Assembly (NCBI GenBank): GCA_907165135.1 | Contig: OU015567.1 | Location: 10,726,001 to 10,790,000, forward strand | DNA length: 64,000 bases | From: Oikopleura dioica | Taxonomy: Eukaryota > Animalia > Chordata | Direction of reading: 5' to 3' | Shown: positions 43,820 through 60,263 of the stretch, piece by piece | Numbering within the stretch: the first letter of the stretch is position 1 | Layout: each line of letters starts with the position of its first letter | Position numbers and translations under genes: made by a program | Notes under the pieces: generated by a model | What the model saw: the letters and a program-made list of their open reading frames with translations, nothing else | Databases searched by the model: none | Told to the model about the DNA's origin: nothing

Positions 43820-46479
43820 TCAACGGCGTCGAGAAGAGACTAATAAAAAATTCGTTAGTATTAGGAATTACTCAACGTTGATTTCAACGGACAAAGAGAT
43901 CGATAAATGTCTCTCCACTCACCTTTCTCACCGCGGTAGTCTCTATCCCGATTTCTATCCGCATCCCGTCGGTTGTTGCCTCGATCGTAATCCCGAGCTC
44001 GTTCTTTACGATCTGGAGTTCGTTCCCGACTATAATCGCGTTTCTTGTCCCGGGACCGTTTTCGATCACTACGCCGGCTCGTCCTAAAATCGATAACAGT
44101 AAATATAAACGAGGATAATCTTGTCTTACTTCTCCGGTTCCCGTCGCGCTTTTTTCTTATCCGGCTTGCGGCTCTTCCGAGCAGAGACAGATCCATCAGA
44201 TGCAGAAGAAGATGATGAGGAAGAGGAGCTTGATGAACTTGAGGATGACGAGGAACTACGAATATGAATCTGACCATGGAAATATTTATCTACCTTGATT
44301 TCCTCCTTCTTCGATCTTTCTTAGCCTTCTTAGACTTGCTGGTCTTTCGATCATCTCTTCCCCGTCGATCTGGCGATCTGGAACGCGATCGTCCCCCGGA
44401 GCGATCTAAAAATCGTCAGATTCTGAAAAATTTTCTCTTCTTACCTGCAGCCCTCTCAAAGTTTCTGACAGGTGAAGGTGATCGGGAAACTCTCCTCTTC
44501 TTCAGAATCTCTTCTTTTTTGCCGTAATACGGATCATAAGGCGAGGGACTTCGCCGCCTCTCGTTCTTTGGGGATTTCTCCCGTTTACGACGAGGAGGAG
44601 GTGTGACACCACGACGAACAACCGGAGCTTCTGGAGTTCTTGAACGACGTCCCATCGGACGCTGGATTGTGACCGTATGTTTGATTTGTTTATCCTAAAG
44701 AAAAATTAATCTTCGCATCATCGACAATAATCAACCTTGAATCGTTTCTGGGTATCATATTCTTCATCAGAGTAGTCATTTAGCTCAACTTTGACTTCTT
44801 CTTGCTGTTTTTCTTGAAGTCTCTCTTTTTTCTTCCGCAAAAGCTTCTCCTTCAAACTTTCTTCTCTAAAAAATAGATTATTTGAGATGAAATTCTGATT
44901 TGAGCTTACTGTTTTCCGAGATTTTTCATTTTCTCCTTCTGTGCTTCTTCTAAGGCAGCTTGCTTCTTGGCTTCTTCAGCATCTTTCTTGGCTTGCTCAG
45001 CTTTTCTTCTTGATTCAATTTCTCTCTCGAGTTCTTGAATTTCATTGTATTCAGTTTCTGTCTTCATTTTATCGAACAGGAAAGTGAGCAGTCGGACAGC
45101 TTCCAGTCGTCGCTGGGTAAGAAGCAGTTTTCGCTCTTCAAGCTGAACTCTAGGGAGAACTTGAATAAAAATACGTTTTTGTTAATTCACCGTTGTTCAA
45201 CTCGCTTTTGCTCCTTTTCTCGCTGTCTTTCCAATCGTTTTTGTCTTCTAGCTTCTTCCCTTCGTCTTCTTCTCTCTTCTTTATTCTTCTGTCGCTCAGC
45301 TTCTTTGAGTTTTTCCTCTTCAAGCCGCCGCTCTTCTTTTTCAATTCTCCGTTTCTTTTCATCGGCCATAGCATCTTCTTCTTTGAGAATTCTTCTTCGC
45401 AAAAGGTATCGCTTTTTCAACTCTCGCTCTGACAAATGCTTCGTGGTATCGAACTTGACTTCAATCGGAGCAGAGTATGACTTTTCGCCTTTGTGGGCAA
45501 ACTTCATGTCTCGCAGAGCATCCATGCAGATCATGAATCCATCATAAGACTTGTATTGAATAAAAACATCGAAGAGGACGGGATTCGCATGAGCCCGTGC
45601 ATCGACTCGAGGATCAATCTTTGGAAATTTATTGAAGAAGAAAATCGAGTTTTAATATGCTACCTTTGGACGATAAGGATCGAGAACTGGAATGTCATGT
45701 TGGCGGATTTCTCCAAACTTTTGGAAAACGCGGAGAACGACATTTTCTGACGGGCGAGTATTGTCTCCTACTTTGAAAAAGCTGCATGGAAGCTTGGAAA
45801 TGTGGACTGTATCGGGTCGTTCACCTGGCTTTGTTTCGTCGTACTCAGGTGCGTCACGAAAAAAATTATTCCACTCGGCCTGAAAAAAGATAAATGTTAA
45901 AGAGCTCACCTAGAATTCCCTTACCTTAGTTGGATAATTCGATTTTGCAGCGCCACAACGAATCTTGAAAGGCTCATTAAACCCTGAAAGCTTCATGTGT
46001 TTGCCATCAAGGCGAGAGGTTACATCATCCATGACGGGTTTATTTGCAACTTCTCCTTCAAAACGGATGAAGTCAAGGGTCGACTTTGTGACCTTAATAT
46101 GCGTAAACTCTCGCGGCGAGACCATCGCCTTCAATCGTTCCATGACTTCCCAGTTAGAAATAGCTTTTTGGTTGCGTTTGTTCACAATGGCTGGAATCGC
46201 CACGGAGATGTTCAAAATTGCGATCGGCTTCAAGTACAAGTTGTCCTGCGCGGAGAGCTCTTTCAAATCGGAAAGATCCTTCAGCTCCAAAAAATTGGTC
46301 ATTCGTGAAATGCCACCCGGCGTGATGACTTTCTTCGAAAGACTGCTGCTCATGAATTGATTTCGGTAGGATGCGGAGGTATCTCGCGATTTTTGGCGAG
46401 ACTTTTCTCCTTCTGCCGGCCCTCCGGTGACCTCCTTTTGCTCACCATAGGTGAAATCACAGCCTCCTCCCGCGGGCAT
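43820..46479 (-). CDS. AKAP17A: A-kinase anchor protein 17A / SFRS17A; start codon uncertain (46479 or a later ATG)
   Basis: LYLKPI..ISNWEVMERLK..STLDFIRFEGE, PGERPDT..IPVLDPYR; RS/RD-rich tail. Confidence 0.88.
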
Positions 46480-46677
46480 GGTGGAAAAGATTCAGACTGT
46501 CTGAACAAGGCTGCTGTTACTCTTCCTTGATTTCATTTAAGTTTCACGTCAAAAAAGAAAGTTTTTGTTGTTATTTTGTCAGCGACTTGATGGGTGTTTA
46601 TTAATATTGGAATGTGAATAAAGTGAGAAGTGAACTGTGTAAGAAAAAAAAATATGGGCAGTGGGACGCTCCTTATT

Positions 46678-49600
46678 CAGTCGATGTCTTGATCTTGAAG
46701 TCCTTGAAGTTGCCGCTTTCTTGGACAAGCTCTAAGTCTTGTTCGTTTGCTGAATAATAAGATAATTAAAGTTATGAAACCAAAATCTTACCGAGATAAA
46801 GAAGACAAACGAGCGACATGCTTGTTGTCAGGTTTTTCTTGTCATCTCCATCAAGACATTCGTCCAACTCGTTTCTCAACTTCGAAAACTGATAGACTTG
46901 CTCTTCTTCATTTTCGAAGGCGCTCTCGTCGAGTCTCGATTGCGTAGCGTTTGCGTCGCTCTCAATCAAACTCTTCATCTGCCCCTTGACGCGTCGGACA
47001 TTCACTCGCCGAGGACGACGGTCGAAGTTGATAAATAGCTTCTCAACTGTTTTTCGCTGGAGAAGATTGTCATCGCCAAACGTTGGCTAAATAGTGAGTT
47101 AAATTTATACTGAAAGACATTAGTTACCTTTGGAAGGATATCTTCGGGAACCACTGTTGGAGGTCCCTCTTCTTCATCCTGAGAGTCGAAAATAGCACCG
47201 AAATCTTCAATGGGTCCATCTTCTATGTTATCGTATTCGATGGGCTCCGGAACGAACTCGTCGCTTATTTGCTCCTCTTCATCTGCTTGGTCTAAGTCGA
47301 GCGGTTCGATTTCATCTTCTCCATCACCAACTTTCTCTAGCTTTTTGAACGGAATAGAAGTCCTGAAACAAGATGAAGAAAGGGACCTTGACAAAGACAT
47401 ACCGAAGTTTGAAGTGCAAGAATCGCGTCTTGCGACTTATTGGCAACTCGACTCCTGGATTTTTCATAAATGTAGCTTCAGCTGCATCTTCTTTGATCTT
47501 CGTCTTCTGAGTCAACTTGTAGATGGACAAGTTGATCATTCCTTGCGCTTGTTGCTCGAACTCTGTGAAAATTGTTTTTTTCTCGGGAGTTTTCTTCGCA
47601 AGTTTCTTTGAAACCCGAAGTTTCTTTGCTTTAGGCTCTTTTCCTTGCGCAAGGGCTTCGTTCTTTTTCACAATCGCTAAATTAGAGATGAATAAACGGC
47701 TGGGTCCGCATTGCCAAGGATCCAATATGGTCCATACTCACGGCAGGTGAAGGCGCCAAGCCGAGGCAAGGAGATGCAACGCGACCACCGTCATGTGCTA
47801 ACTCCCGCAGAGGCAGCACCTCGGCCTAACTCGACGGTGGTGAGGCCACTCAGCATGTGATGGCTGAGCTGATGTGCTAACATAATGAGCGAGTTGAGCT
47901 CATTAATCAGATTAAGCTCAACCCCCGGATGAGCTGCAAATTTGGAGATATGGAGGATAAAAAATTGAATTTTCTGAAAGTTACCCCAGTAGGGTTTTTT
48001 GATGCGAGGAATCCGAATCTGAAAACAAAAAAGAGTTTAAATGTCTAATTTACACAGGGCAGTAATGTTCGCGAAATTTCCTGTCCAAAGTAAAAAAGCC
48101 CTCCACGATCCAGAAATTTCGCTAAGATTACTGATGAAGTAGTTTACACTGTACTTTAAAAATTCAATACAACAATCATGATATGCATTAATTGTCATCT
48201 ATTAAAGGGCAGTTATCTTAGCGAAATTTCCTACCCAGAAGAGAAAAGCCACTCAGGATCTAGGAAATATCTTTATAAGGGCAGGAAATTTCGCTAGAAT
48301 TACTGCCCGTGAAGGTATTAATTGGATTTTGATGGGCATTCTTCTAATTTCGCGAACATTACTGCCCTGTGTAAATTAGACATTTAAAGTCTTTTTTGAC
48401 TTTAGATTCGGATTTCACGCATCAAAAAACCCTACTGGGGAACCTTTTAGAAAATTCAATTTTTTTTCCTCCATATTTCCAAATTTGCAGCTCATCCGGG
48501 GGTTGAGCTTAATCTGATTAATGAGCTCAACTCGCTCATTATGTTAGCACATCAGCTCAGCCATCACATGCTGAGTGGCCTCACCACCGTCGAGTTGGGC
48601 CGAGGTGCTGCCTCTGCGGGGAGTTAGCACATGGCGGTGGTCAGGTTGCATCTCCTTGCCTCGGCTTGGCGCCTTCACCCACCGAGAGTATGGACCATAT
48701 TGGATCCTTGGCAATGCGGACTACCCCGAATAAACATCTAATACCGTTAATTTACCTTGAATTTTTGGAGGAATTCGTGGTACGCGAAATCTGTGGGTCT
48801 CGCGCCTGGACTCAAAAATTTTATCCAAAACAGAATCGTCAAGATTATCCGTTTGCACGGCAGTCTGTTCATAATCAATTTGCGGTAGCGGCGTCATTGG
48901 AATGGTGGGAGTCGGAGGTGGCAAGACTTCACTGGCAACTTCTTCGCCAAGATCTTCAAATAGCTTTTCAGGGTCGATACTCGGCGGGCAGACAAGGTCA
49001 GGTGCGGCTTCAAAATTTTCAGACTCGGGCAAGTCCAAGTCGTCACCGAAGTCGTTGAGGTCAGGGGCGGCGAAAATAATAGATTCTTCGTCTTCTGGAT
49101 CAAATGCAGGTTGCTGCCTAGTATATGACTTGAAAGAGATTCGATAATATGCAATAATTTACGATTGGGAGGGAGCAGGTGCGGCGGGTGTTTTCAGCCG
49201 ATCTTCGATTATGTTTTTGTCAAAGCTTCCCGCGAAGTTTGGATGCTGATGAATGTCGACAAAGAGATCTTCGCCTGCATTAATCACGTCTTCGAACAAT
49301 TCAAAGCTGAAGACAGGCAAATTGTCTATAAACAAATCAATCGAAAGAATTAAAAAACGTTGATTTACTGCTCGGTTCGTCGTCTTTCTTTTTGATTCTG
49401 GAGCTTGACTCGTTTGGAACGAGTTTCAGATCATTGAATGATTCTAACTGTTGGTTCTGGATGCGAAGCTTGGAAATGTCAGTTGCACTGTCGAGTTTCG
49501 AAGCTACTTCCAAAGCGTAAGGGTCTTTCAGCTGATCAACTTTTTTGTTCGAGATCGGAGTCGGATCCTGAAATAAGTAAGTAGACTTTTAAAACCTGAA

Positions 49601-50474
49601 ATTGCATTTTACTGGGTAAAGAAGCTTCAGTCGCTTTTTCTTTGTTTGCTTCTTTTTTGACGCCACATCTTGAGAATCTCCAGGCTGACTATCGTCTGGA
49701 TCAGCTTCTGCTTCTTTTGCATCAACCAGGTCTGAAATCAACTGAATGCCTTATTGCTTTTGTCTTTTTGGTACCTTTCGTAATCTGACAAGCTTCATTA
49801 TAAATAGCATCGACTTTGTAGCACCAGATTTTTGTTGCTCCGTCCAAAGCAGTCGCAGCTTCCGCAAAATCAACTTTGGCCCTAAAAATTCGTTTAGCCG
49901 TATTGAAAAATTTGCCTGTGGTTTACTCGTTGGATTTTTTGAAAAGAGTCGACGCAAGGTTCAAGTTGAGCTTGTATACGTTTTTCTCGTTGATCTTATT
50001 TTTCATGAAGAGTTCCATCGTGTGTTTGTACTGAGCTGAGACTTCTTCTTCCGTCTGCATTTCAGTATGAAGATCTGCTCGCATTTCCGCAGCGTTTCTA
50101 ATAGTCCGATCTAAAGCCGAAGTTAAAGACTTTTAGAAAAATATCTAGCTTGCCTTTTTGGTTTTCTGGAGTCTTTCCATGATCACCGACCGTCTTTTGA
50201 GATTTCTACTGACATTGGAGTCCATCGTCGACGTTTCATCTTCGATGTCGGAGTCGAACGCATCACTGAATTTTATTTTCTCGGGTTGGAAACGAAGAAC
50301 ATCCATTTTTGGAAAAATCGAATACATAATGTTAGAATTTCAATCGAGCTCTGGGAAATTACTGATAAGGAAAGCTTACTTTTGGGGAGGAGGAGCCAGC
50401 GACTGTCTCTTCTTGGTCTTTTTCGACTTGGGACGTCTGATTTCGAACGAGTCATCGTTTTCTTCTTCCATCAT
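46678..50474 (-). CDS. NCAPH: Condensin I kleisin subunit (Barren/CAP-H)
   Basis: NKINEKNVYKLNL, DFAEAATALDGATKIWCYKVDAIY, and C-terminal NLTTSMSLVCLLYLANEQELEL. Confidence 0.85.
47698..48727. mobile_element. 1030-bp foldback-type non-autonomous DNA element in an NCAPH intron; 8-bp TSD GAATAAAC
   Basis: About 375-bp inverted arms (47704-48079 vs 48346-48721). Removing it restores a 41-nt GT-AG intron. Confidence 0.85.
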
Positions 50475-50895
50475 TTTCTCAAACGAGCTCTGAAAACATG
50501 GTATTTGGCAAAAGAGAACCATAAAATGTCATTTAGGCAAGGAATGTAAATGATAGATTTGATTTTTTCACTCTCAAGATAATTCAAAACAGATTTGCTT
50601 CACAAACTCATTGATGTTAATAAAAATATAATTTAAAAAGTTTTCATTGATAAAATCAACTCCCGAAAATTGCGCGCGCGACGGTTTTTTTTTCTTCGCT
50701 CGCCCACGCAATTCTCCGGAGAAGGCCCCCGTTCTCGGACGAAAAGGAAGAAATGCAAGTTCCGGTTGCTGATTGAGAATCTTCACATATTGAATGTGAC
50801 TCCTTCTAGAAAATTGCAGCTTCGACAAATTGGACAAATCAGAATACGATGTCAATTTATTCTTAGTATATTTTCTAAATATGATGGTTTTATTG

Positions 50896-52201
50896 TCAGA
50901 GACATTTTCTTTGTACAGCTCTAAAACCTTCTTCTTCATACTCCGCCTTGGATACCATCATCGCTCTTGCCCCAGGAGCCTCTCCCAAAATAGAAGCTCC
51001 TAGCCACGTCGATATCTCAGCTTTGCTCGAGGACTCAATATTTATCGGCGCTCTCTCGGGCGAACTCTTTGCCATTTCGATGCTCAGTCGTTCCTCGAAA
51101 CCATCAAACTCTGCGACTCCTCCGCTTATCAAAATGTTGCTGTACATTTGTCTTCGCATCGACATGTCCACACTTTTTTATGCAGGCCGAGAGCACATCA
51201 TGAATTCCTTCATCGTTTTTGCCCAGTACTGCTGGGTTGAACATGGCTTCTGGACATCTGAATCTCTCGTCGCCTAAAGTTATTCGTTGCCCATCTGGGA
51301 GATCGAACGATTTCTCGTAGAACTCGCACAGAAGTCGCTTATTTTGACTCTTTGACAGATCACTTCGAATTGGTTCAAAAATGATCATAAATTATGAAAG
51401 AAGAAAATTTCAAGTTGTGAACCAAACATTTTGAAAACATCGAGAAACATAGCAAAGACCTTCTTTAATTCTTTTCGCGAACTCAAAATCCCGTGATGAG
51501 CTCATCAGATTGAATCCTCTCTCAGTCATTATGCGAGTAAGATAGTCAGTCAACTGGCGACCTGAGACCTCGAAGAGTCTCGTCTGTGAAGGCAAAATAA
51601 TTCCATCGAAGACGGAGCAGATGGTTGTTGTCAGATCTCCCCCGTGAACTGAAAATATTTTGATGAGAATATTCGCAGCTTCCTAGGGGCCTTACCTGAG
51701 ACCCCTGTAACTTTGCCAGCAGCATAAAGACTCAGAGGCGGTGTTACAGAAGTAAGAAATCTTGAAAAATGAAAGCTCTCAAAAGCCAACTCTGCAAAAA
51801 AGGACCTCGAGCTTAGTGGTGTGAGGTAGTCTTCTGTGAGAATGAGTTCTCGGCCGTTTGGAAGCTCACCAAGTCCCTCCAAAAATGCCCTTTCCCAGAT
51901 AATTTCTATTTCTTCTGGATTCAATCGTTGCCGATCAAGTTTCGCATAAGAAAATATAAGATCTTCCCAGTTTGAAGCAATTTCGTTGTTTAGGTAGTGA
52001 GTTTGGCTCATTTTCGGACCCCAAGGTTTCGGTCTTCCAACGATTGAAGGCATAGTCTTTTGTTGGGCTCAATAAAATGAAAAAAACTAATTGTTTTCTG
52101 TCATTTAAAACCCATTCCCATGGAGCTTCATCGCCAGTTTCACCAATTTTTGTAACGCTTGCACCGTTGTCCAAAACTACAACTGGACGTTCCATTCTCA
52201 T
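50896..52201 (-). CDS. Divergent actin-like/actin-related protein; apparent 1-bp insertion near 51169
   Basis: VVLDNGASVTKIG, PSIVGRP, LPDGQRITLGDERFRCPEAMFNP, ISGG and STWLGASIL. Confidence 0.85.
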
Positions 52202-52655
52202 TTATTTCTAGTGTTTTCAACTGTCTCTCTCTCTATGAAATAAAAATCTGCAGAGAACGAGGGATCACAATTGTCTGCAGAGTCGTAAAGCAAAAACTGT
52301 GAGAAATGTCTTTTCGTCGGACGAGAAGAATCCGAGTAATGAGCGGCGGTCGGTCGCACTTGGGTGGCATTTTCTGAGACTTTTCTATCTTGGCCTTGTT
52401 TTTGTTCAGATTTAGATTGATCCCTTTGGTTATGCTTGTTCAACTAAAATTACTTTTCATGCTGGCGTGAAGATGCCGAGAAGTCGTAAATGCGCTCACG
52501 AGTTGACGTAAATGCATCCACTTGAATACCAACTGGCGGAGCAGATCTTCTGAGACTCTCCAGATCTTTCAGCCAATCTGCCATACTTGAGCTAAGAATA
52601 AAACCCAAAGGTTTCCTGCTCGATTTCATCAATTCAACTTACAAAGAATAAAAAA

Positions 52656-53153
52656 ATGAAACTTTTCGCTACCTTCGCCCTCTTCGCTTCTTCGAACGCC
52701 ACCTTCGCTCGAAACAATGTCGAGGCCATGTGCACCAGCTGCCTCTCTGACCCCTCTGATGCTTGCTGGGGAGCGTGCTACTCCATGTCTTCTCGATCGG
52801 GTACCACTGTCCATGATGCCATCGTTGTCCCACAGGTGAGACTGATTCAAAACGATGTATTTTCTACTTATTAATTTAAGTGCACTAGCTGTCTCTCTGA
52901 GCCATCAGATGCCTGCTGGGGAGCGTGCTACTCTCTTGGAACCACTTTCTCCAACGAGGAGATCGATTCCATGTGCACTAGCTGCCTCTCCGAGCCATCC
53001 GATGCATGCTGGGGAGCTTGCGCTCGATCAACCTCCGCCCAGTTTGCGATCAACAAGGACTTCGTCAAGATGTTCGAAGGCATGAAGGGACAAAGCCGAT
53101 GCACCAGCTGCCTCTCCGACCCATCTGATGCTTGCTGGGGAGCGTGCGCCTAA
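52656..53153 (+). CDS. Secreted 150-aa precursor with four CTSCLS(D/E)PSDACWGAC cores (exons 52656-52835, 52881-53153)
   Basis: Signal peptide MKLFATFALFASSNA; phase-0 GT-AG intron; four near-identical 48-nt repeats with synonymous variation. Confidence 0.85.
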
Positions 53154-53309
53154 AGAATGCGTGTTCTGACCGGCTGAAATGGACCGTTTTCAATGTCCCT
53201 ACAATTTCTCCTGTTCTTACTGTTGTTCTGAATGGTGTAATAAATGTCTTTCCATATTTCTAGAAGCAAATCAACTGATGTTTTTAAGTATTTTCTTTTT
53301 CAAATCGCA

Positions 53310-55333
53310 ATGAGACTACTTTATCTTTTTATATTTTCTTACTCGACTGCAATCACTTTGGAGGCATGCAACGAGCTTCTGAAGAAACAATCAAAAACTA
53401 TTTCTTCTTCAAGTGCACCGGAGGCTAATTGGAAACGGTGCGACGACTTGCGAGTGAGGGATGAGAAAATTCGAGTTAGAAATGCTCTAAATTTCTTCAA
53501 AAGAATTAGTCGAACGCTCAAGCTGCTTCAGGAAAAGATCAAGGTAGGCATTTAGCTCATTTATATGGGGTTTATTCAAAATTTCGCAGGTCAGCGAAAG
53601 AATTGAATGCAGTCATTATCGTATTCTGTTGGAGGCGTCTGAAGCGTTGATTTCAGTGCCAGTAAACATCATCAGCTCAAGGAAAAGATCCATATAATTG
53701 TCTGTATATTACTGCTGAAAATTTTTGATCTCAAAAAGCACAAAGACGTCTTTATACAAAGAAAAAGTCAGCAGCCTCCTGCTACATTCAATTGAGACAG
53801 TCTATCTTCTGAATAAAAGTCTCAGCAAAAACGATGACTGCATTCGAACAGGCAAAATCACTAATAACATTGATAAACTTCGACAACTCCACCTTGCTAT
53901 CAAAAAATTGGAAAATCCTTTAGGTAGGGATACTGCGTCTTGTTTGTTTATTCAATTTTCTAGATAATCCTGAGCCAATTTATGCTGATTATTACGACGG
54001 AACAGAAGGTCACTTTGAAAATACTGAAATCGCTTCAAGTTCGACACTATCGAAAATTCTCTTCGCTGTCTTTATTTTGCTGTTTATTTTCGCATTTCTT
54101 TTCTGGGCCATCAATCTGCAGCACACAACTCCTGATGTTCCTGGATACTGAGAATCTTTAGCAGAAACATTTTATTTTTAGAGGAAAAATGAAATTGAAT
54201 CAGTTGATATTACTTCTTGGAGTGGACGCAGTCAGACATAGGAACAAAAAATACTCAGATGATGAAACTTTCACTTACAAAACAGGTACTGTCTTTGTTA
54301 ATTGGAGTTTTTAAAAATTTTTAGAAACGCAAGTTCAAAATGTTGCAGAGCTCAGCGGAATTGAAGAGTACATTACAATGATTGAAGATGAAATTAAAGC
54401 AGCAAGAAAGGCTGACAAGATCCTCAAAGACAAACCCAAGAAAAAAGGAAGAAAGAAACATAACGTCTCCTTTAAATACATCATCTCAGGGAATGGTCAG
54501 CATAAGCTTGATTGATGAATGAATGTTTGATATGTTATTAATTTCATCGATGACCAACGCTAAGCCTTTGTTACATCGTTTGGAGTTTTCACAATTCTGG
54601 CACTTGTTCTTCCTAAACCAAAACCAGAGTCAGCTATCGGAGTATCTGCTGGCCCAAAGGATGAAAGTCGCAGGAGAGAAAGGCGAAGAAAAAAGAACTT
54701 ATTCCCGTCGGGAACGAATAAAGTTGAGCAGCTCATAGAATCAGCAAGAGACTCATATCAACATTTCAGAGATCTCTCTGGTAAGAATAACAATCAAAAC
54801 TTCTACTAACAGTTTAGGTCGGTATAAAGAAAATATGAAGAGATTATGGGACAGGAACCGGACAAAAGATGACTATGAGCAAGTTTGGTCCGAAAATGAG
54901 AACCCCGCGTATCTAAGTGACGACAGGAATGGTTTAATTCAACGATGATTAATCCATATACAATGGACCATTTTTACCATTAAAAAGCTCGGAAACAACA
55001 TACGATGCCGAATATCAAGATGTCTTCCAAAACGACTACGATTTCACTGACGATTCAAGTAGCGACGATTCCGATAGTGAGGGATCTTTTCAAGGTGTTC
55101 CACTGAGAGAAGCGGACGCGCAGAACGATCTCCGAATTAAAACTTCTCCCAATGCTGAGATTGATCCAGAGTCGTTGCTATCCGAGCGCGCCTTCGAGAA
55201 GAAAACAACGAAGAAAGTCTGCAAAAGCTGCAAGTCTAAGAACCCTCCTGTACCAAGACTTAAATTAGACACTGAAACTCCGAGACAACCAACAGTTGAT
55301 GTCATATTTGACGCACAGGAAAATTTGCCTTAG
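53310..55333 (+). CDS. Hypothetical single-pass membrane protein, multi-exon
   Basis: Signal-like MRLLYLFIFSYSTA; TM ILFAVFILLFIFAFLFWAI near 54060; acidic terminal exon. Confidence 0.45.
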
Positions 55334-55390
55334 AATTCTTTTCTGCCACTATATTATCCTAATAAAGAATTTTTGATAAAATGAGATATC

Positions 55391-58300
55391 TCACTCGAGA
55401 AGTCGCAGTTTGTCTTAATTTCTGTTTGATTTGGCTTCATGCTTTATGCACTTTTGAGGAAAGACAGGCTAGATAGAGCTTGGCACGATAACAGTGGAAC
55501 ATTTAGCGTTATCAAACATGAAGTTTTTTTCTCGAATAACTTTGAGGATCGTGTGAATGATGTGATAGTGAATGAGTTTTCGCTCAGAATTGTCCAGGTT
55601 GTAAAACTGTCCCTGGTACTATGTCAGGAATAGAGTCAGCATTGAGACCAAGTTCGTTGCCGTTGTCATCCATTTTATCAACAAGAATGCTAGTGATCGG
55701 GTTGAGCAATGTTCGGTTTGCTTCATAACATTTGAGCATCTTGTCGAGCGATTCCAATCCATTCGTGTCAACATATTCCTGGAAAGGTAGAGCTAATGTT
55801 TTCGTTCTAAATGATCCGAATTAACTATTACTTTACCGATTAAAACTTACCGATTTTGAACAAGTGTATCAATCTCGATCGAGCATTGATCTGCAGAAGT
55901 GAGCTGGGCAACAACTTCGATGAGCAAGTCACGCATTTTTGATCTGTAGTCGACAAGTGTTGAGTCCATCTTTTGATAAGTGCCCGCGAGATGTTCAAGA
56001 TCTTGCATAAGGTCTACCTGACTTGCAGGGTCTGATTTGATCAGTTTCAGTGCTACAAAAAAGAGCTAGCAATTAATATTTTTATCAAGGCGTACCGTTT
56101 GGCGAGTTAAGTGACGATAAGCAACTTATTTTGACTTTGCTATGCTGATGAGACTTCATAGAAGACGAAAGTGCTTTGATAAGCAAATGGGACCACTCTT
56201 GATTGATAGAAGATATCGAATCATTGCCGAAGAAGTACTCGGCAGCCTTAGACCCATTCCAAACAACTTTGGCATTGCGCTGCTTGATGGCAGATTCAAG
56301 AACTTTTACTAAGCGAAGAACTGTGCATTTTGGTGTTTTCGGAGGTGCGAGTTGTAGAAATCCGCCAACTGCTCGTAAGGCCTTACATCAAATTTAAACC
56401 ATTGACAAATTGAAAAATCCAACCTGTGGTTTAACGCGGTCTTGCGCTGATATGTGGTCGTAAAAGTCCTTTGAGAGGTTCATCAAGTCGAAAAAGGACG
56501 AGATTTCAGCCTGAGAAAAAATCTCATAAACAAAGGGCAAGTCTTCTGCTTCATCAACCCTTCTCTCTTCCATTGTCAACCTCATTGCATCTGCAAGACA
56601 GGCAATCGCGTAGATCAAATCATTGCGCACTTTTGAACTCAAATCGTGAGGATTAGAAGTAAAGATCAAATCTTTATGCTCGATCGTTTTCTTTAATAAG
56701 ACGTTGGTGACATTGTTGAGGAAGTTTTCATCGGAGCGGATGGATTGTATGAGCACGAGATCGCCAAGAGCCTTGATGGCGCGAGTTTGCACATCAATAT
56801 CAGAGTGGTTGCACATGTCAGGCATCACGGACATGACCCAAGCTTGTTGCCGATTGTCTAGGCGCGAGAATACTTGGCCTTCGATGTGAGACACAGCTGG
56901 GTAACAATTAGATTTATGAGCTAACAATGACAAAGATACCTCCAAGAGCGGCCTCGGATATTGAAGCATTGACGGGAGTAGCTGTTTGAAGAAATTTGGG
57001 CAGGATGGATTCGATGAGATAAGACCAAAGACCGAGCATTGCCTCGGTAGGCACGGGTGTGTCTTCATCTGGAGTAGTGTTGTTAGCCATTCGCAGACTT
57101 CTCGACTGGGCATTGATGGTTTGAAGAAGGCGGAAGGCAGCTGCGATAACGTTTCTTAATCAAATAAGAATATGCAGATATTAGAAGACTTACGGTTGCA
57201 TTTCGGAATTTAAAAGTATTTTCATTATATCTAAGATATGTACGTGGTTCTCTTGCAAAGTAGAAAAGTGATGGGTCGTGAAATTCTGGAGTATTTCGAT
57301 CGCTTCTTCTTCGATAGTCGTCCTCATTTTTGGATCACATGGGACAGAAGATGGCGATTCTTCGCGCCCGTAAGAGTTCCAAAGAAGAGAATATGCAGTA
57401 GCTATTGGCCAGGGAGCATCACGGACAGATTTGCAGATCACTAGAGAAGTCTTGTAGGAAATCAAAAGAAGTATTGATCACTTACTGTAGGAGATATTTT
57501 CTCCAGCCGTGATTTCGTCCCATGGAACGCAATACAATCCTTTGCAGCTTTCAGACAGAGTTCGTTCTCCAGCGATTGATTTCAAGAACATAAATTGAGC
57601 AGCTATTCGGTTAAGAGGTAGAACTTTTGTAATGACTGTTTTGAGCAGATTTGTACGGAAGACTGAATAGTTCGTTGCTTCGGATGCTGTCTTCAAAGTG
57701 TTGTAAAGCTGGTTCATCAATAATATTTCTTGATTGCAGAGGAAATTCATTCGTTGTTCTTTTTGAAGTGCAAAGATCAGAAGATGATGCAGACGCTCGA
57801 TTGATACAGTAAGAGCCTCTCCAAGAGAGGTGTAATTTGGTCCAGATCTTCGGGCAACACAACATCTTTGGATGAATTGCTTGCATTGTTGAATAAAATG
57901 TCTGAGGACTTCGACTGCCAGATTTCGCGCCTTTGGAGCCGGGTCCCAAAGAATAGAGAGAATCAAACCACAGTTTCCCTGATTCAAATCACCTTCAACG
58001 ATGCTTTCTGGATTTTGAATACTCGAAGGGAGAAAAAGCTTCCAATAGTGACACAAGTCTCGCTTTCCCGTATTTTTGACAATAATTTTAAGTGTTATCA
58101 GTGCAGCTTGTCTAATACAGCTTCGTTTCTGTCTCAATTTTCGGGATTCAGAGTCCGAATCTTTTTCTGCATTTGTATCCGACTCGCTATCTGAGCTTGA
58201 AGAAACTCCGAGCCACGGAAGTCTGTCTTTTATTTCTTGCATGTCTGTATTTGGCATCTCATTCTCAGCTGGTCTAAATTTTCTTCTCGTTACTGCTTTC

Positions 58301-59256
58301 TTCCTCCTAACCCGTTGATGATCTGAGCTGCGTTCCTCCGGAATAACGTCTTCAGGAAGCTCTTCACGTTTGATCGTCTTATCCATTGGTTGTGCCCCTT
58401 GAAGCCCATAAAGAGACCAGTTGAGGCCTTGAGTCAACAAGGTATTCAAATCATTCGCATGAATATACTCGTTTCGTGAACTAATTCTTTCAAGGATCCG
58501 TGATATTCCTTTGAGCGCCACCATGATCATATGTGCAGTAGTAAGGCACTTATTTCCCATAGAAGCGCCTTCCATGTCCAAAAGCTTGAGTAAAATATCC
58601 ATTGCTCGTGATACCGCTTCTTTTTCTGGATCGTGGCCGGTTATTGATGGAAGCGAAATATTGACGCACGATTGAGCAAGAGCGCATCTTATGTTTGGGT
58701 TCAGTCCTGGATTCAAGCAGTGGACAAATAGATCACTAAGATGCTTGCCAAGTGGAAGCAACATTGGAATATGAATTCCATTTTGATAAAGAACAGCAGC
58801 TAGGCCATTCAACATAGAAATAGCGAGGGGTGTTTCTCCTTCCAAATCAAAGTCTTGCGTCGGAGGTAGGAAATCCACAAACAGTTGAGTAAGGGACAGT
58901 GCACTTTGTTCGTCGAAAATAAGAAGTCTTCTGCCAAAAAGCTCCACAAGGTCTCCAAGATCTTTTATCGCATTGGAAGTCTCTCTTTTATAAGAAGTGT
59001 CAATGCTTCGAAAACGAGAAGTCAAGTCATGAAGCTCTGCGCAAATACGAGCCTAAAAACAAATTACGGTCGTGTTATCTTTGTTCGTATTTACCTCATA
59101 TCCAGTAAGAGGTCCATGAGCAAGGTGTTCGATATCAGCAAATAATTTTCTCCTTTCTTCAAAATTAAATTCGTGAAATTTGGAAAGCTCGGTTAGAGCA
59201 CGATTCCAACGATCGGAAACAGTCGTCATTTTACGATCATAAGTGTCTGAAATCAT
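55391..59256 (-). CDS. HEATR6: HEAT repeat-containing protein 6
   Basis: SSSDSE..IRQAAL..YWKLFLP..DPAPKARNLAVEVL..RLHHLLIFAL, characteristic of HEATR6. Confidence 0.8.
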
Positions 59257-59302
59257 TTCAGTAAGAATCTTTCTGTGAATCTTCAGGTGAATAAATTGAC
59301 AA

Positions 59303-60263
59303 CTACAATTTGCAGAAAATTTCCGAATCGGCATCGACGATGGAAACAGCTTCCTTTTCAACAAGTAAATCAAGAGTCATCGCGACGTTTATTGAGGCGG
59401 CCGGATGAAGCACTTCAGGAACATCAGCGTAGAGAACTTTCACGATATCACGAATTCTTTTTTCTCCGTTTTCAAGCTGCTCAATAATTTGATTCTCTCT
59501 CATTCTTCTGTGGTTGATGTAAAATTCCACTCGCTCGAGGCCATTTTCAATTACTCCGCCGTGACCGGGAAGAATCAAACAATCTCCAAGCGCACGTATT
59601 TTCTCAAGCGAATTCATGTACGAGTTGTAATTATCAATGACAGTGGTGGAATTGCCGAGTATATTGTCCCCGCTAAACAAAAGAATGAAAATGAGCGTGA
59701 GAATGAATTTTTCATCCCCTTGGAAACAGAGCTCGGGATAATTACCTGAATAAGACTCGCTCGTCTTTCATCCACAAACAAATATGATCATCCGCGTGGC
59801 CCGGTGTAAACAGAACTTGAATTTTCCTACCGCACGATGTTTCCAAGACATCCCCATCCGTCAAAAAATTCCAAAACTGTTCCTCGAATTTCGGTATTTT
59901 TACGCCAGAAGGCATCTTCTCTCCTGCGCCTTTATAAACCTTCGGGTAAGGCACTCGTTTATGCTTGAACAGAGGAATGTCGCCACAAATTTCTCGCTGG
60001 ATTGCCTCAACTCCGCCGATATGGTCGAAGTGCCAGTGGGAGATGATGATTTTATCGATCTCACACTTTTCGGCCTCAAGGACTTGAGTCAGCGACTTAA
60101 CAACGGACTCCTCATTCGGCGATCCTGTATCAAGTAAAACTCTGCGCTGCCCACTGCCGATAAGATAACAGTTAGTCCCCTCTCCAGTCATTGGGGATGG
60201 GTTTCTAGCGAGGATTCTTATTATGCTTGGGGATATTCTGTTGATGTAGCGTAAGCCCGACAT
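59303..60263 (-). CDS. LACTB2: Metallo-beta-lactamase endoribonuclease LACTB2
   Basis: NPSPMTGEGTNCYLIG, SHWHFDHIGG, TPGHADDH, SGDNILG, PGHG. Confidence 0.9.

Follow-up and report, generated by a model that had tools for sequence, protein, structure and literature searches.

Polyubiquitin-type polyproteins and multi-copy neuropeptide precursors consist of units that are identical in protein sequence, divergent at synonymous sites and variable in number between taxa, and that lie head to tail or are bounded by defined cleavage sites. Guanylin, with an active peptide of the form C-x2-C-x4-C-x2-C, carries a single copy at the C terminus of its prohormone. The alpha-hairpinins of plants, examples of which are Sm-AMP-X, Tk-AMP-X and MiAMP2, have the motif CXXXC-Xn-CXXXC and are encoded as cassettes in which a signal peptide precedes 5–12 modules; the animal CS-alpha/alpha toxins (kappa-hefutoxins, OmTx and the conotoxins flf14 and vil14) have been grouped with them (PMC7191063). 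Among tunicate proteins, vanabins hold 18 conserved cysteines and nine disulfides in one bow-shaped domain, are rich in Lys and Arg and are cytoplasmic in vanadocytes (PMC9486056). Oikosins, the house proteins of Oikopleura, are secreted and often lineage-restricted, and many have no known domain (PMC3390340).

Appendicularians rank among the major grazers of the sea and depend for their biology on secreted, fast-evolving extracellular proteins. Here we describe a gene of the appendicularian Oikopleura dioica whose product contains four near-identical four-cysteine modules behind a predicted secretory leader. The gene lies in a window of 64,000 nucleotides (contig OU015567.1, positions 10,726,001–10,790,000 of the forward strand), and all coordinates given below are positions within this window. 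It is on the plus strand, has two exons (52656–52835 and 52881–53153) and specifies a protein of about 150 amino acids. Its features, together with the region immediately upstream, are as follows.

52202–52655, no strand: intergenic region, probably a divergent promoter, between a minus-strand actin-family gene and the Cys-repeat gene
52656–52835, plus strand: exon 1, 60 codons (MKLF...VVPQ) for the signal peptide, a short pro-region, core 1 and linker 1; the same in five orthologous loci
52656–52709, plus strand: predicted signal peptide MKLFATFALFASSNATFA, which opens with MK, continues in a hydrophobic stretch of 11 residues and closes with small-x-small TFA
52731–52778, plus strand: core module 1, CTSCLSDPSDACWGAC (translation and repeat search)
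52779–52835, plus strand: linker 1, 19 amino acids; in ...HDAxVxPx-C, Asp and Pro never vary across the family (D54 and P59 of the alignment)
52836–52880, plus strand: intron of 45 nucleotides, GT–AG, phase 0; position kept in all O. dioica lineages
52881–53153, plus strand: exon 2, 90 codons and the stop, with cores 2–4 and linkers 2 and 3; begins exactly at core 2
52881–52928, plus strand: core module 2, CTSCLSEPSDACWGAC (translation and repeat search)
52929–52973, plus strand: linker 2, 15 amino acids, acidic (translation and charge calculation)
52974–53021, plus strand: core module 3, CTSCLSEPSDACWGAC (translation and repeat search)
53022–53099, plus strand: linker 3, 26 amino acids, basic and predicted to be helical; its AQF-x-x-NK motif is common to the 44%-identical relative P0009
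53100–53147, plus strand: core module 4, CTSCLSDPSDACWGAC (translation and repeat search)
53148–53153, plus strand: C-terminal Ala and TAA stop (translation)
53239–53244, plus strand: AATAAA polyadenylation signal, 85 nucleotides beyond the stop

The four 48-nucleotide cores are in-register copies of one repeat family with the unit CTSCLS[DE]PSDACWGAC, and both the repeat search and the translation bear out the four 16-residue cysteine repeats of the original prediction, which had been made from the letters of the window alone. It was also right that the spacers are mutually unrelated and 15–26 residues long (the linkers measure 19, 15 and 26 residues), that a single Ala and the stop follow the last core, and that dibasic sites are lacking (KR, RR, KK and RK are all absent). 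The plus-strand gene is real; its intron at 52836–52880 went unmentioned in that prediction. The signal peptide was judged by eye and its cleavage site placed from the sequence; the MKLF and hydrophobic start is kept in the distant relatives P0012 and P0027. The mature part, predicted to be about 130 residues long, is acidic (pI 4.3–4.8) and rich in Ser and Thr.

Public annotation of O. dioica already lists the gene, without a name (CBY22797.1). Exon 2 as a query retrieved a protein of 149 residues and 92% identity, listed as 'unnamed protein product [Oikopleura dioica]' (P0001; CBY22797.1, CBY37085.1 and UniProt E4WYN3); the window gene was searched exon by exon, and this orthologue was used for whole-length analyses. 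The splice junction VVPQ|CTSC is present in P0001 and in the transcript-derived proteins P0007, P0002 and P0008. The latter three belong to MERC, which we take to be protein-level assemblies of Tara Oceans metatranscriptome reads; because they come from such reads and carry the exon junction without the intron, they derive from spliced mRNA. The gene is therefore expressed, with spliced transcripts in marine metatranscriptome catalogues, where the lack of any transcript had been named beforehand as grounds for giving up the prediction. That environmental metatranscriptomes yielded assembled transcripts suggests that the mRNA is abundant. On other O. dioica contigs, four further records (P0003 to P0006) are gene calls in the prokaryotic style, which run through the intron. 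P0008 is a three-module variant from which exactly one 31-codon period is missing, with core 2 joined to core 3; it is a copy-number allele, or else the repeat collapsed during assembly.

Within the 64.3-Mb genome the gene is single copy, as neither three protein queries nor a degenerate pattern found a second locus or paralogues. The pattern [DE]-P-S-x2-C-W-x2-C matched four times in that genome, each time in this gene, compared with 0 and 1 matches in reversed controls; the four-core pattern is far beyond chance.

We compared the orthologous loci L003, L004/L005, L006 and L007 using Nei–Gojobori counts for each exon. Where complete, these loci have an identical two-exon layout and identical exon lengths, and an intron of 41–45 nucleotides occupies the same place in each, with a sequence that has diverged between lineages (23–36 identical columns of 41–45). 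The structure is thus shared by five O. dioica lineages despite near-saturated synonymous divergence (dS between lineages of about 0.2–2). Between these lineages, dN/dS was 0.00–0.09 for the cores, 0.03–0.12 for the linkers and 0.00–0.14 for the signal peptide, and in distant pairs the cores had about 3–5 times fewer non-synonymous changes than the linkers (Fisher p = 0.006–0.056). These ratios point to strong purifying selection on the cores. Selection on the core had been proposed from core DNA that differs mostly at synonymous sites, and the counts agree: paralogous cores in the window differ at 2–6 of about 10.3 synonymous sites and at 0–1 of 37.7 non-synonymous sites. The companion claim, that the spacers diverge freely, does not hold, as each linker is kept between orthologues. 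By the same measure the linkers too are under purifying selection and far from neutral.

In three closely related lineages, orthologous cores are 3.5–4.5 nucleotides apart per 48 nucleotides, versus 7.2–7.8 for non-orthologous cores. The modules therefore evolve independently, and purifying selection, not recent duplication, maintains their amino-acid identity. Cores 1 and 4 of the window are the one exception. They differ at 2 of 48 nucleotides and both have Asp at position 7, and core 1 of the sister lineage L007 has Glu at this position, which suggests occasional gene conversion, here probably a recent event with core 4 as donor and core 1 as recipient.

Searched exhaustively with phmmer, 1.84 billion cluster representatives yielded 13 proteins, a profile search returned 18, and one metagenome scan added a further locus (L020). 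Real relatives outside the O. dioica complex form at least four lineages with 3–5 modules each: P0009, with four modules and 44% identity; P0010, P0012, P0013 and P0027, with five modules (CMQCDTDPSPTCWGAC); P0011, P0014, P0015 and P0028 to P0032, with five modules in which Met replaces the Trp after Cys3; and P0016, P0019 and P0026, with at least three modules. These divergent relatives were found only in marine metagenome and metatranscriptome assemblies. Across the family the consensus module is C-x2-C-x2-[DE]-P-[ST]-x2-C-[WMY]-x2-C. The four cysteines, Pro8 and Ser/Thr9 are invariant in 35 of 35 distinct modules; Asp or Glu usually occupies position 7, Trp, Met or Tyr fills position 13, and A, Y, N, G, H or V follows Cys4 at position 17. 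Cys1 is preceded in most modules by Tyr, Met, Phe or Arg, with Gln also seen. Linkers keep positional features family-wide, and parts of them are recognizable at 36–44% identity.

The contigs of the relatives have a GC content of 35–41%. In the L017/L020 lineage, a phase-1 intron of about 54–72 nucleotides lies between the signal peptide and module 1 (L017:189–330 and L020:171–330), and is backed by the transcript P0012. Both the GC content and the small introns fit other compact-genome appendicularians. In these records, the gene is confined to O. dioica and to a handful of lineages of marine eukaryotes that are presumably also appendicularians. Intron positions vary by lineage, and in P0028 an intron apparently interrupts a module at its turn (CMQCAS | DPSPTC). 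We found no conserved synteny between the O. dioica locus and the contigs of distant relatives, and a neighbouring open reading frame on one such contig had no match in G000.

AlphaFold was run twice, on P0001 alone and on P0001 with an 18-row family alignment. Confidence was low (mean pLDDT of 58 alone and 61 with the alignment; pTM of 0.37–0.48), with pLDDT at 70–75 across residues 20–110 of the aligned run. Both models are all-helical, and in both each module is a helix–turn–helix in which a helix extends to C-x-x-C-L-S, E-P-S makes a three-residue turn and a second helix runs from D-A-C-W-G-A-C into the linker. Positions 1, 4, 12 and 16, which the cysteines occupy, mirror each other across the turn, and nested Cys1–Cys4 and Cys2–Cys3 bonds would therefore be geometrically natural. 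The Ser/Thr9–Pro10 pair of many modules (D-P-S-P-T-C) would fit a helix N-cap with Pro at N1. A compact solenoid is unlikely, because one linker in a relative is just 10 residues long and rich in Pro.

The models suggest that the module could be a disulfide-stapled hairpin akin to those of plant alpha-hairpinin cassettes. As in the alpha-hairpinins, there are four cysteines per module, which are predicted here, and were solved there, to lie on two short antiparallel helices with Cys1–Cys4 and Cys2–Cys3 bonds; little beyond the cysteines is conserved, and a signal peptide is followed by a tandem cassette whose module number varies by taxon. Unlike in the alpha-hairpinins, the spacing in all 35 distinct modules is C-x2-C-x7-C-x3-C rather than CXXXC-Xn-CXXXC, Pro-Ser/Thr is found in every turn, the modules carry negative instead of positive charge, linker sequences are maintained but contain no conserved cleavage sites, and the source is an animal, an appendicularian; no sequence similarity between the two was detected.

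Searches of known families support the earlier view that the repeats belong to an undescribed family: Pfam, PDB sequence, fold and literature motif searches were all without a significant match, and in these searches the module matches no described family. In Pfam, each exon and the full-length orthologues gave only sub-threshold zinc-finger and cystine-knot noise. Among all PDB chains there were zero matches at E up to 10, either by phmmer of the orthologue or with a profile hidden Markov model of 21 single modules (26 columns). An ESM Atlas feature search gave no usable match, and Foldseek against the PDB, an Atlas shape search and a wide VIA-align search returned generic helical bundles only (best E of 2.2, TM at most 0.40 and Z at most 5.6). 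Literature searches on the accessions or the Cys motif found no papers, and an O. dioica single-cell preprint had no relevant mention. We rejected several candidates. A phmmer match to a NACHT-HEAT protein (E of 2e-4) pairs LxDPSDxx-x-AAxxLG at the same period, but hhalign of the family profile against this protein gave a probability of 0.9%, and the Pfam models HEAT, HEAT_2 and HEAT_PBS did not match; we regard the match as chance. A fungal protein matched by phmmer is of low complexity and lacks the Cys pattern. The resemblance to guanylin and furin-like repeats, which the original prediction itself called loose, is a similarity of Cys pattern only; in contrast to guanylin and uroguanylin, the core has x7 and x3 spacings and occurs four times, and no Pfam match is seen at E up to 10.

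UniRef automatically names E4WYN3 a 'Snake toxin/toxin-like domain-containing protein', which would make the protein a member of the snake-toxin-like (three-finger, Ly6/uPAR) superfamily. We regard this as very improbable: the three-finger, Ly6 and activin-receptor Pfam models do not match at E up to 10, the cysteines form four 4-Cys units rather than one domain of 8–10 with neither CC doublets nor a C-terminal CN, the predicted structure is all-helical rather than β-rich, and the fold searches returned no three-finger chain.

The cysteine spacings CxxC and CxxxC, the enrichment of Met in and around the modules and the Trp-to-Met exchange at position 13 in one lineage could instead indicate a metal-binding (Zn or Cu) or thiol-redox protein, with the four cysteines of each module and the Trp or Met after Cys3 acting in a vanabin-like manner. 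The sole near-misses in Pfam are zinc-finger models, albeit far below threshold (E of 0.04–6.6), and the vanabins of tunicates are Cys-rich helical proteins with reversible disulfides (PMC9486056). Like vanabins, the protein is tunicate-restricted, small and Cys-rich, with a helical, disulfide-held state that is predicted here and solved for vanabins. Unlike them, it has four modules of four cysteines, a predicted secretory leader and an acidic pI; a vanabin identity was rejected, given 16 cysteines in four near-identical modules versus 18 in one domain and no match to any PDB chain or Pfam family. We consider a metal or redox role improbable, as the cysteines are expected to be oxidized behind a secretory leader, there is no significant match to a metal-binding family or PDB chain, and neither a His nor, past position 7, any Asp/Glu ligand pattern is conserved.

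More weight attaches to a reading in which the protein is a multi-core precursor that the secretory pathway would process into four near-identical stapled peptides (3–5 in relatives), with roles as hormone, pheromone, defence peptide or protease inhibitor. Such a precursor would be the animal counterpart of the plant alpha-hairpinin cassettes, which are likewise built of a signal peptide and 5–12 modules (PMC7191063). The modules are identical or one residue apart despite largely scrambled synonymous sites, residues specific to a lineage are common to the modules within it, lineages differ in module number (3–5), as O. dioica may within itself (P0008), the chain stops right after the last module, and in most lineages the final module or the one before it follows an Arg (GQSR|C and PQPR|C). 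In near-identity at the protein level, synonymous divergence and variable number, the modules resemble the units of polyubiquitin and neuropeptide precursors, from which they differ in being spaced by unrelated, conserved linkers without recognizable processing sites. The original prediction took a peptide precursor as its headline, and here the evidence leads elsewhere: in no lineage are the modules flanked by a dibasic or other conserved cleavage motif, purifying selection acts on the linkers, which can be aligned at 36–44% identity, the helices predicted by AlphaFold extend into the linkers, and the modules are anionic, which most antimicrobial peptides are not. On balance we find cleavage into peptides possible but rather unlikely.

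The reading that we prefer, with a probability of about 50%, is that of an intact, multivalent, modular extracellular protein, because the linkers are constrained, cleavage motifs are lacking and the predicted helices continue into the linkers. A beads-on-a-string structural protein, the second option of the original prediction, fits these data better than the precursor does. Against an intact protein stands the fact that near-identical modules with lineage-specific common residues also mark multi-copy peptide precursors. We hypothesize that each module, with a few flanking residues, would form two helices, the first of them short, joined by a D/E-P-S/T turn and stapled by the two nested disulfides Cys1–Cys4 and Cys2–Cys3, and that the conserved aromatic residues or Met before Cys1 and after Cys3 would form a mini-core. 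The secreted chain would then work intact, displaying 3–5 copies of one acidic, Trp-bearing surface. Its partner would be a repetitive extracellular one, for which the matrix of the house or mucus, or a microbial surface, would be our guess. As a predicted secreted, lineage-restricted protein without a known domain, the product resembles the oikosins, but no oikosin-named sequence is in the 90% cluster of the orthologue, and the house-proteome supplements (Hosp et al. 2012) do not contain the core string.

Two bolder versions of these ideas can be put forward tentatively, and we think it doubtful that one of them applies. The chain may be an animal stapled-hairpin polyprotein that is released by non-dibasic cleavage as 3–5 anionic peptides of about 20–25 residues, serving appendicularian signalling or defence; or the intact array may be a new carbohydrate- or cellulose-binding module that organizes the house matrix. 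If either the peptide polyprotein or the binding array is real, it would represent a new extracellular mini-domain family. The gene is a lineage-restricted orphan in a small family, and what is new is a compact, strongly constrained mini-domain without a Pfam model or solved relative, near-identical copies of which are kept by selection in one chain. Should the modules prove to be stapled helical hairpins, an animal would have a parallel to the alpha-hairpinin cassettes, and peptide engineering might gain a small, stable scaffold; with a house-related function, the protein would be a tractable new house component.

Upstream of the Cys-repeat gene, an actin-family (Arp-like) gene on the minus strand (51400–52201, with a Pfam Actin match at 51634–52068) is arranged head to head with it, and this arrangement is kept in another O. 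dioica lineage (L003/L018). The minus-strand open reading frames of 81 and 60 amino acids at 52198–52632 have no conserved counterpart in L018 and are therefore probably not coding, which leaves the 450 bp separating the two genes devoid of conserved open reading frames. Downstream, about 65 nucleotides past the AATAAA, a conserved multi-exon gene begins on the plus strand (53311–55330), and its first residues (MRLLYLFIF...) resemble a signal peptide; Pfam matches none of its exon frames, and its spacing from the Cys-repeat gene is operon-like for Oikopleura. Positions 45000–59800 of the window keep their gene order and are collinear over about 14 kb with L018:3300–17200, an 18-kb JGI metagenome contig (Ga0115008_10001604) from this other O. 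dioica lineage.
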